From positions 124,001 through 188,000 of the forward strand of contig NIVC01000543.1 in the NCBI GenBank assembly GCA_002269645.1: a DNA stretch of 64,000 nt, read 5' to 3'. Of this stretch, positions 40,837 to 43,581 are shown piece by piece. How positions within the stretch are numbered: the first letter of the stretch is position 1; each line of letters opens with the position of its first letter. This DNA comes from Macrostomum lignano (taxonomy: Eukaryota). A model generated the notes under the pieces. That model had not been told where the DNA came from. It saw only the letters and a program-made list of their open reading frames with translations, and did not search any database. Made by a program: the position numbers and the translations under genes.

Positions 40837-43581
40837 TCACTTCTCCTTCATGTTGATGATAGCGCGGAGGCTGTAAACGGTTGGAGATAAGTTTCTCACT
40901 TCATCACAGGCTATATATGAAATGAAGTAATTAAAAAAAACTTATCAACTCCTAGATTTCGGGAAAATTTCTGAACTCTTAACATCTTCAAGCCCGCTGG
41001 CTGCTCTGCAGCCATCTGCCATCCACTGAATGCCCGCAGTTGCGGCTGTCTGTAGCCAGAACAAGCGGCACACTGCCACTCACTCTTAGAAAACCCACTG
41101 TGGTTGCAGAGCAGCCATCAAAGAAACAGCACCTTTTTTTACACGCATTAGCTCATTAGGTTGAATTTATGGCTACTCTGCAACCATCGGGTTTTCTAGG
41201 AGTGAGTGCTGTGGCTGCTTGTGGGCAGACGCAGATGTCTATGGCTGCTCTGGAGTCAGCGGGTTCTCTCAGAGTGAGTGCAGAGGCTGAGGGGCAGAAG
41301 TGGTTAAAAACCGCGACCTATATCCAACTCCTAAGACTTCCATAAAACCCAGACACCGGCCGTATGAATTCAAGCGATAAATGAAACATCCTGAAATCTT
41401 GAGTATAGCCTCACAAACCTCTTGCCAGCATGGAGTAGGTCAAACGACTTGTTGATGTCGGCCAGCGAGAAATTGTGCGTCACAAACTGGTCGATCTTCA
41501 CCTTGCCGGCCGCGTAGCTCTCAGCCAGGCGGGGCACGTCGTCAAGCGAGCGCCAGCCGCCGAAGGCGCAGCCCTTCCACACGCGGCCGGTGACGAGCTG
41601 GAAAGGCCTGGTGGCGATTTCCTGCCCGGCGGCGGCCACCCCGATGATGACGGAGACACCCCAGCCTTTGTGGCAGGACTCCAACGCAGCGCGCATTGTG
41701 TTGACGTTGCCGACGCACTCGAATGTGTAGTCGAGGCCGCCATCGGTCATCTCAACCAGCACCTCCTGCGGATGGCAATGGAAGCGGAGGGCTGCATACA
41801 AAATGAAGGGGCTTAGTTCAATGGCAGCCAGCAGCACCTCCTGCGGATGGCAATGGAAGCGGAGGGCTGCATACAAAATGAAGGGGCTTAGTTCAATGGC
41901 AGCCAGCAGCACCTCCTGCGGATGGCAATGGAAGCGGAGGGCTGCATACAAAATGAAGGGGCTTAGTTCAATGGCAGCCAGCAGCACCTCCTGCGGATGG
42001 CAATGGAAGCGGAGGGCTGCATACAAAATGAAGGGGCTTAGTTCAATGGCAGCCAGCAGCACCTCCTGCGGATGGCAATGGAAGCGGAGGGCTGCATACA
42101 AAATGAAGGGGCTTAGTTCAATGGCAGCCAGCAGCACCTCCTGCGGATGGCAATGGAAGCGGAGGGCTGCATACAAAATGAAGGGGCTTAGTTCAATGGC
42201 AGCCAGCAGCACCTCCTGCAAAGAACACATTTTTTTCAGGAGTGGCATTTCGGTTCTTCTATACAGTGTCTATAGGTCCGAAAAGCAATTTTGGTGAAAC
42301 TTTATAAACAGACTAAAGCAGGGTTAGAGCTGAGAGCAGTCTAATGTTCTCAAAATATTTCCAAGGTCACTAAACATGTATGGCCCCTCAATTTCGCGGA
42401 ATGTAGGGGACTAATCAAATTCAAATTCCTGGATTGCTGTTGCTTTAAAAAAAGAAAATAGAATCTCTGACATTGAAATCAAGTGCAGCAGGAACTCCTA
42501 CCTGAATAGGCCTGGGCGAGTGGTCCAGCGGGTTGACGCACTCGGTGGCGCCAAACTGCCTGGCAACATCGAACTTGGCCGGGTTCGTATCCACAGCAAT
42601 GATTCGGGCAGCGCCGCGCTCCTTGCAGCCCATGATGACGGCGAGGCCGACAGCGCCGAGGCCCCAGACGGCGCAATTGCTGCCTGGCTGAACATCAGCG
42701 GTGTTGAGGGCGGCTCCGTAGCCGGTGCTGATGCCGCAGCCCAGTAGGCAGACCCGATCGAGCGGGGCCTCCGGGCGCAGCTTGGCCACGCTGATGGCGG
42801 CTACCACGGTGTACTCGCTGAAGGTGCTGGTGCCCATGAAGTGGAACACTTCTTTGCCCTTGCAGGTGAACCGCGTGGTGCCGTCTGGCATGACGCCTTG
42901 GCCCTTTCAGGTTTGGTGGGCAAGGATTGCGAATGCAACATTGAGTGAACTACTAAATGCGGTGTGAAGTAAATTGGCAATTGACGTGATCAACTTATCA
43001 TGAAGTGGGGATGTAAAGTCACTTATTAAAATTACAGGCAAAATTCCTAGAATTTCACTGCACTTCGAATACAAACAAACTAAATTTCCAATTCTTCTGC
43101 TTCTACAACGAGATTCAAGCAAAATGCAGATTGTGCGACTTGTCGAGACATTTTAGTACTTTTTTGGAGACCAAGCAAACCATAAACCAAACTCTTGCTG
43201 ATCAAAAAATCAAAAGAAAAAAGCAACATAATGACTGACCTGAGTGATACGAATCTTGGAGCACAGGTTAGTCTTGCCAGAGGTGCAGAACTTGCACTCC
43301 CTGCACTGTGGAATGTAGCAAGGCAGGACGCTGTCGCCCACAGCAACCGAGGTGACGCCTTCGCCAACTGACTCAACGATGCCGGCACCCTCGTGGCCCA
43401 GGATGACGGGGAACTTGCCCTCAGCATCCAGGCCATCCAGCGTGTAGGAGTCAGTGTGGCAGACACCTGTGGCAACGACACGAATGCGAACTTCGCCAGC
43501 CTTGGGTGGCGCCACAGTCACTTCCTCAATACTCAATGGCTGCTTTGGAGCCCAAGCCACTGCTGCTTTGCATGTGATTGG
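40837..43581 (-). CDS. ADH5: Class III alcohol dehydrogenase / S-nitrosoglutathione reductase; exons 43240-43581, 42502-42903, 41419-41765, 40837-40870; ATG exon not found
   Basis: [57 protein letters not shown]|[10 protein letters not shown]. All splice phases are consistent. Confidence 0.95.
40995..41265. mobile_element. Palindromic MITE-like foldback in the last ADH5 intron
   Basis: Arms CACTCACTCTTAGAAAACCC...GGTTGCAGAGCAGCCAT (from 41077) and their reverse complement (to 41208), plus weaker outer arms. Confidence 0.65.
41757..42219 (-). repeat. 75-bp x6 perfect tandem repeat containing the ADH5 splice acceptor
   Basis: Each unit ends CATCCGCAG|GAGGTGCTG; the outermost and innermost acceptors are 450 bp apart (42215 and 41765). 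Confidence 0.96.

Follow-up and report, generated by a model that had tools for sequence, protein, structure and literature searches.

How is an exon joined at the right place when its acceptor stands at the end of a row of identical copies? The question is raised by a 64,000-nucleotide stretch of the Macrostomum lignano genome (contig NIVC01000543.1, positions 124,001 to 188,000 of the forward strand; hereafter the window). There the gene BOX15_Mlig021965g2 (g2), predicted to encode a class III alcohol dehydrogenase (ADH), carries a 75-bp tandem repeat across the boundary between intron 3 and exon 4, and every repeat unit contains a complete 3′ splice-site module. The answer considered likely here is that the repeat is a young minisatellite of intron 3, that normal mRNA is made through the last module with the upstream modules standing as decoys, and that a paralogue buffers the gene.

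The multiplied acceptor of an alcohol dehydrogenase gene

Tandem Repeats Finder (TRF) reports 6.2 copies of the 75-bp unit at 41757-42219 on the minus strand, with 100% matches, no indels and a score of 926. Read along the gene and delimited by TRF and exact matches, the unit consists of GAGGTGCTG, the first 9 nucleotides (nt) of exon 4, and 66 nt that are the last of intron 3. The layout on the minus strand is ...tgtgttctttgcag GAGGTGCTG, then six times the 66 nt ending in CCATCCGCAG plus GAGGTGCTG, then GTTGAGATG... The 66-nt core has six exact occurrences without a mismatch and none elsewhere in the window, where shuffled sequences give an expectation of 0. Units of about 10-100 bp repeated head to tail are typical of a minisatellite, or variable number tandem repeat (VNTR), and an array of 75 bp x 6.2 has this form. 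Its last intron-end copy (41766-41831) carries the acceptor of the deposited gene model, CCATCCGCAG/ with its G at 41766 (a slash marks the splice junction). At the outer edge, alignment with the paralogue delimits a partial copy, GCAG/GAGGTGCTG (42207-42219), which is preceded by the tract tgtgttctttgcag and provides the outermost acceptor, ttctttgcag/GAGGTGCTG.

Among all the AGs that lie between the exon 3 donor and exon 4 there are seven CAG/GAGGTGCTG acceptors on the minus strand, with the G of the AG at 42216, 42141, 42066, 41991, 41916, 41841 and 41766. The first six, spanning 41841-42216, are the predicted decoys. Each of the seven keeps the reading frame of exon 3 without meeting a stop, and from the outermost to the last they add 150, 125, 100, 75, 50, 25 and 0 residues; translated in frame, the array reads as a 25-residue peptide six times over, followed by EVL. 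Each unit also brings its own upstream signals. Motif matches read by eye place candidate branch points of the last copy at A 41813 (AACTAAG) and A 41804 (CTTCAT), the CTTCAT candidate lies 38 nt 5′ of the CAG in every unit, and a pyrimidine-rich tract (75% C/T over -23 to -4) follows. Three further AGs occur per unit. TAAG/ and TGCAG/ shift the frame and lead to early stops, the cryptic TGCAG/ lying 26 nt upstream of the main acceptor (at 41792 in the last copy), and GGAG/ lies 3 nt downstream of the main acceptor and in frame. The predicted join after exon 3 is GAGGTGCTGGTTGAG from the last acceptor, GAGGTGCTGCTGGCT from any upstream one and CCCTCCGCTTCC from TGCAG.

Window positions 58520-34837 are 100% identical to NIVC01000543.1 (GCA_002269645.1) over 23,684 bp, and the coding sequence (CDS) of g2 spans 40837-52520 on the minus strand in five coding exons, at 52520-52515, 43581-43240, 42903-42502, 41765-41419 and 40870-40837. 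Joined through the last acceptor, these translate exactly to the deposited protein PAA81232.1 (P0001; 376 residues, 100% identity). Exon 3 (42502-42903) ends in ...CCTATTCAG, with the donor GTAGGA starting at 42501, and exon 4 (41419-41765), which ends in HAGK-, is the ordinary continuation past the last acceptor. In the deposited model the GT of the exon 3 donor (42501-42500) is linked to the last acceptor with the junction CCTATTCAG/GAGGTGCTGGTTGAG, leaving a phase-0 intron 3 of 736 nt. The donors of the gene are degenerate (GTAAGT, GTCAGT, GTAGGA and GTTTGT). Alignments that cover 100% of the protein give identities of 72-78% with many sequences named as class-3 ADH or S-(hydroxymethyl)glutathione dehydrogenase, and it holds both expected Pfam domains, PF08240 ADH_N (GroES-like; residues 30-158, 1.1e-21) and PF00107 ADH_zinc_N (Rossmann; residues 200-326, 2e-24). 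From this full-length similarity the product is predicted to be a class III ADH, and the label ADH5 is justified. The junction of exons 3 and 4 falls directly after residue 250, inside PF00107, so any insertion there would fall in the coenzyme-binding domain.

Most of what the initial annotation had described from the letters alone is borne out by these results. It had proposed that a repeat multiplied a complete 3′ splice-site module of ADH5 into seven in-frame acceptors, with a seventh TTTGCAG/GAGGTGCTG at the outer edge; that the upstream ones add 25-150 residues in a stop-free frame; and that the last alone gives the normal enzyme. Its donor at 42502 needs a small correction, as 42502 is the end of exon 3 in forward-strand numbering and the donor GT occupies 42501-42500 on the minus strand.

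Comparison with the paralogue and the age of the array

Where did the module come from? A second M. lignano protein of the same 90% cluster, Mlig021965g1 (g1; PAA56937.1, P0121), is identical at 372 of 376 residues (99%), and its locus (L002) lies on a separate contig, NIVC01002556.1, with the same downstream neighbour. In the window this neighbour is a cytochrome P450 gene (502 residues, PF00067) at 37317-39035 on the plus strand (19486-21204 of L001). It is convergent with ADH5 in both paralogous loci, and this conserved synteny supports a block duplication.

Intron 3 of g1 measures 357 nt, against 736 nt in g2, and contains a single unit, at the position corresponding to the array, with tttgcagTAGCTGCTG before it. 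It ends in ...tgtgttctttgcagTAGCTGCTG, the 66-nt stretch CCATCCACAG and then /GAGGTGCTGGTTGAG, and the 9-mer upstream of the stretch is TAGCTGCTG. Copy number therefore varies between homologous loci (6.2 in g2 vs 1.2 in g1), as is expected of a VNTR, and both flanks of the array align cleanly to g1. Judged from this alignment, the 66 nt are the ordinary ancestral 3′ end of intron 3, present as a single copy in g1, and the array is a g2-specific expansion of the complete 3′ splice-site module, its units free of substitutions. Two other origins were considered and rejected. A transposon-like (introner-like) element that entered exon 4, duplicated 9 bp of target site and was later amplified is suggested by the tttgcag-R-U-R layout, in which 13 bp are common to both ends; it is contradicted by g1, where the 66 nt form an ordinary intron end and the upstream 9-mer is the one given above, and by the restriction of the core to this one place in the window. 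A coding repeat was rejected as well: no ADH5 relative has such an insert, the peptide is without relatives in the searched collection and gives no Pfam match above threshold, and an in-frame TAG stands upstream in g1.

The flanks offer a candidate starting point for the expansion. At the place of the outer partial copy g1 has GCAGTAGCTGCTG, with the in-frame TAG; g2 has the exon version there, in which the TAG reads GAG. Of 13 positions, GCAGTAGCTGCTG and ACAGGAGGTGCTG share 10, CAG and TGCTG among them, so that an imperfect direct repeat flanks the stretch (CAG-TAG-C-TGCTG upstream, CAG-GAG-G-TGCTG at the exon start; candidate repeat CAGnAGnTGCTG). The ancestral intron ended in a 66-nt stretch with branch-point-like motifs, a pyrimidine-rich tract and CAG, directly before exon 4, GAGGTGCTG GTTGAG... 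In g2 a 75-bp segment, 66 nt of intron with 9 nt of exon, was amplified to six full copies; the short imperfect direct repeats probably served as the sites of replication slippage or unequal exchange, and the outer partial copy may subsequently have been homogenised to the exon version.

How old is the array? Over the non-repeated part of intron 3, g2 and g1 differ at 19 of 275 aligned positions (6.9%), plus indels, and over the 66-nt core at 1 of 66. An array as old as the divergence of g2 and g1 would be expected, at about 3.5% change per lineage, to show about 15 differences among the six g2 units; there are none in 450 bp, so the array is young. By a Poisson estimate the expansion took place in about the final fifth of the time since the split, with ongoing homogenisation or a contribution from short-read polishing as alternatives to so late a date. 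Between the CDSs of the two copies there are 10 synonymous and 5 nonsynonymous changes over 1131 nt, a ratio that points to purifying selection on both copies overall, as an average that predates the array. Codon 244, 19-21 nt before the junction, is CAC in g2 and AAC in g1, so that the g2-specific end of exon 3 reads ...GACCACTCGCCCAGGCCTATTCAG, vs GACAAC in g1.

Perfect identity among the units also raises the question of whether the array is a product of assembly, its units being in truth fewer, differently numbered or not identical, and inflated or homogenised by Canu and Pilon. The other arrays of the window range from 62 to 99% matches, and beside them this one, the only long array in the region at 100% identity, is unusual; short reads and RNA-seq were used in polishing a genome described as difficult to assemble (PMC5730564). 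However, an array of 463 bp is far shorter than the PacBio reads, which cover the genome about 130x (PMC5730564), and assemblers tend to collapse tandem repeats, not to expand them. The flanks align cleanly to g1, several other arrays of the window reach 96-99% identity, and a difference in copy number between the paralogues recurs at another array of the same gene. An artefact of this kind is considered very improbable.

That other array lies in intron 4. Its 72-bp unit is present in about 1.7 copies in g2 (41168-41289, minus strand; blastn) and in 20.7 copies, with 94% matches, in g1 (L002 11521-13012; TRF). As far as these two sequences tell, minisatellite flux between the ADH5 copies runs both ways, intron 4 being the reverse of intron 3. 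The copies also differ in intron 1, which follows the 6-nt coding exon ATGGAA and measures 8,933 nt in g2 (43582-52514) vs 3,631 nt in g1 (L002). Its ends alone align, at 77-84% identity, and about 5 kb would have been gained or lost in one copy, possibly via a mobile element.

Choice among seven modules

Which of the seven acceptors is used? The initial annotation had set against the last site the rule that splicing favours the first suitable AG after the branch point. That rule applies behind one branch point. In the array, branch-point candidates and a pyrimidine tract come with every unit, so the choice falls among whole modules and not among AGs behind a single branch point, and the rule alone gives upstream units no advantage. 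Normal g2 mRNA would arise when the donor of exon 3, at 42501, pairs with the last module, which alone abuts the real exon 4 from +10 on and gives the shortest exon (347 nt vs 422-797 nt), and exon definition together with exonic enhancers would favour this module. Within a module the internal TGCAG, only 12 nt from the CTTCAT branch point, could be bypassed. RNA structure was considered as a means of masking the decoys, and the fold of one unit with its flanks was no better than shuffles (z = -0.87).

If an upstream module were occasionally used, 25-150 hydrophobic residues would enter the Rossmann-type coenzyme-binding domain, the protein would probably be inactive, and its mRNA, being in frame, would escape nonsense-mediated decay; use of TGCAG would shift the frame. 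The array would be tolerated on two grounds: the enzyme is also supplied by at least one unexpanded paralogue, and this genome constantly generates such arrays. Following a recent whole-genome duplication, the DV1 line is reported to carry nearly every gene in three paralogous versions, located on chromosomes S, L1 and L2 (PMC12896417), and the assembly holds 180 Mb of duplicated blocks at identities of at least 95% (PMC5730564). With these reported three paralogues and a second ADH5 copy that has a single unit, selection on g2 splicing is relaxed, and the earlier statement that a conserved gene "must" cope with its decoys was too strong.

Could the decoys really be used? A substantial part of the g2 pre-mRNA would then be spliced to upstream units, gaining 25 to 150 residues, or to TGCAG, giving frameshifted and degraded messages, and g2 would be a hypomorphic copy heading for silencing under the cover of its paralogues. 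This is the main rival to last-module use. From -66 to +9 each of the six internal modules matches the true one exactly, so that no splice-site score on that span separates them, and the upstream modules lie nearer the donor. The in-frame products would escape decay, redundancy relaxes selection, and the annotation pipeline would have concealed isoforms of this kind. The deposited annotation combines a STAR/StringTie/TACO assembly of RNA-seq reads with BLAT-mapped de novo transcripts; only isoforms reaching at least 75% of the major one passed the filter, and repeat-overlapping transcripts were dropped before submission to GenBank (PMC5730564). Against decoy use stand the deposited g2 model, which is RNA-guided and normal, and the g2 reading frame, which is intact and differs from g1 mostly by synonymous changes. 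Nor is any protein with the repeat peptide on record. A unit-only query of the 25-residue peptide found no protein sharing words with it in the searched collection, which is weak evidence given the annotation filters, and a query of two units plus exon 4 returned ordinary ADH fragments only, in a search insensitive enough to leave P0001 unlisted despite its containing exon 4 exactly; negatives from mixed queries in this word-indexed search call for caution. The repeat-length-dependent isoforms proposed at first thus find no support, and no expression data for Mlig021965 were found in the full-text literature searched or the supplements of M. lignano papers. On this balance decoy use appears unlikely, although it is a rival to be taken seriously.

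Normal splicing through the last module, the account preferred here, has further points weighing against it. Its main support for g2 is the deposited model, to which reads or transcripts of g1 may have contributed, and isoforms bearing the insert would be made invisible by the annotation filters. The argument from exon definition is general knowledge and does not come from this species. Perfect unit identity could partly stem from short-read polishing with Pilon, and whether the outer 9-mer was converted in g2 or mutated twice in g1 takes an outgroup to decide.

The same normal mRNA could also be reached in steps. The first acceptor would be used, and pairs of the form GAG/GTGCTG ... CAGGAG/GTGCTG would then be excised in multiples of 75 nt. 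AGGT occurs in each of the units, and every period of 75 nt opens with GT and closes with AG, so excision would be scarless. In human cells duplicated AGGT segments can be spliced at low efficiency and about 60 nt suffices (PMC3265369), and the real donors of g2 are degenerate. However, GTGCTG lacks the G at +5 found in three of the four real donors of the gene, and the acceptor needed is the second AG of the CAGGAG pair; nothing calls for such a route, since going straight to the last acceptor yields the same product more simply. Stepwise removal is regarded as extremely improbable. Recursive splicing in the strict sense, one of the ways out first suggested, fails on the junction CAG/GAGGTG, which regenerates no 5′ splice site, and on the length of an intron of only 736 nt.

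A bolder proposal is that competition among the seven modules measurably diverts g2 transcripts to insertion isoforms, frameshifts or secondary splices of 75n nt, so that copy number tunes or silences one paralogue after the recent whole-genome duplication. This is held to be quite unlikely. If it were true, the locus would display a repeat-driven route to the decay of a paralogue, or to new coding repeats or intron sequence, at its very start.

The repeat-rich setting and known systems

Tandem repeats make up 14.9% of the window, in 29 merged arrays, and simple and tandem repeats together make up 15% of the M. lignano genome (PMC5730564). Further high-identity minisatellites lie at 57707-58058 (32 bp x 11, 99%), 60584-61546 (32 bp x 30, 97%) and 62363-62860 (51 bp x 9.8, 97%), which indicates that young arrays are common in the region. 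Very long and nearly pure tetranucleotide microsatellites occur at 16627-16908, (TCTA)x70 with 99% matches, and at 24326-24681, (GTTA)x89 with 96%. An interstitial telomere-type TTAGGG run of about 9.7 imperfect copies occupies 14524-14579. The 99-bp x 18.4 array at 17555-19378 on the plus strand (82% matches) is coding and corresponds to 33-residue ankyrin repeats (Pfam Ank_2 8.9e-92, Ank 8.9e-85); its open reading frames, 17560-18057 and 18054-19490, are mutually out of frame around 18054-18057, where a frameshift or an intron would lie. Rfam and tRNA scans of the window gave no matches.

What would the g2 array then mean? It is a fairly ordinary by-product of a repeat-rich and gene-redundant genome, and no function is indicated. 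The locus illustrates how a genome with 15% tandem repeats lengthens introns and endangers splice sites, and how the redundancy of paralogues after genome duplication lets such changes persist. It does not overturn current understanding. Provided that the array is real and that g2 is expressed, the gene would provide a ready-made experiment on how the spliceosome chooses among identical acceptors 75 nt apart, with g1 as the single-unit control in the same nucleus and in a species in which transgenesis is possible (PMC5730564).

Several known systems share features with the array. A phrase search of the literature for duplicated 3′ splice sites found none. The intronic VNTRs of ABCA7 (PMC5954066) and of TERT intron 6, with its 38-bp repeats (PMC3948165), are like the g2 array in being head-to-tail arrays of units of tens of bp within an intron of a conserved gene, in differing in copy number between gene copies and in their possible effects on splice choice. 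They are reported to lie away from splice sites and to act via length or RNA pairing, whereas the g2 unit is a complete 3′ splice-site module with 9 exon bases, which makes every copy a predicted acceptor in frame. Tandem (NAGNAG-type) and duplicated alternative 3′ splice sites likewise offer several AGs to one donor, with in-frame alternatives, and the g2 units themselves end in CAGGAG. NAGNAG sites, however, are 3 nt apart behind one branch point; those of g2 number seven, are spaced at 75 nt and have separate upstream signals.

The creation of introns by AGGT duplication (Hellsten et al. 2011, PMC3265369; potato RdRp, PMC4974935) comes close in another way. As in g2, AG/GT is repeated, removal of whole periods restores the message and length is gained in one step; GAG/GTGCTG stands in all seven copies of g2, and GT...AG bounds each period, as the AGGT-containing units of that model require. 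Under the AGGT model, however, exon sequence is duplicated and an intron is born at an intron-less site. In g2 a pre-existing intron was lengthened via its own 3′ end and the existing donor suffices: g1 has the intron at the identical phase-0 position with a single unit, and length alone has changed. Recursive splicing shares with the stepwise reading of g2 the idea that an intron is removed in parts through internal acceptors. Its ratchet points juxtapose AG/GTRAGT within introns of tens of kb; in g2 the junction is CAG/GAGGTG, the GT, of the weak form GTGCTG, comes 3 nt downstream of the AG in the exon-like part, and the intron measures 736 nt. Set beside these systems, the g2 array is a minisatellite that by chance straddles a 3′ splice site, an instance of two known processes, minisatellite expansion and the duplication of splice signals.

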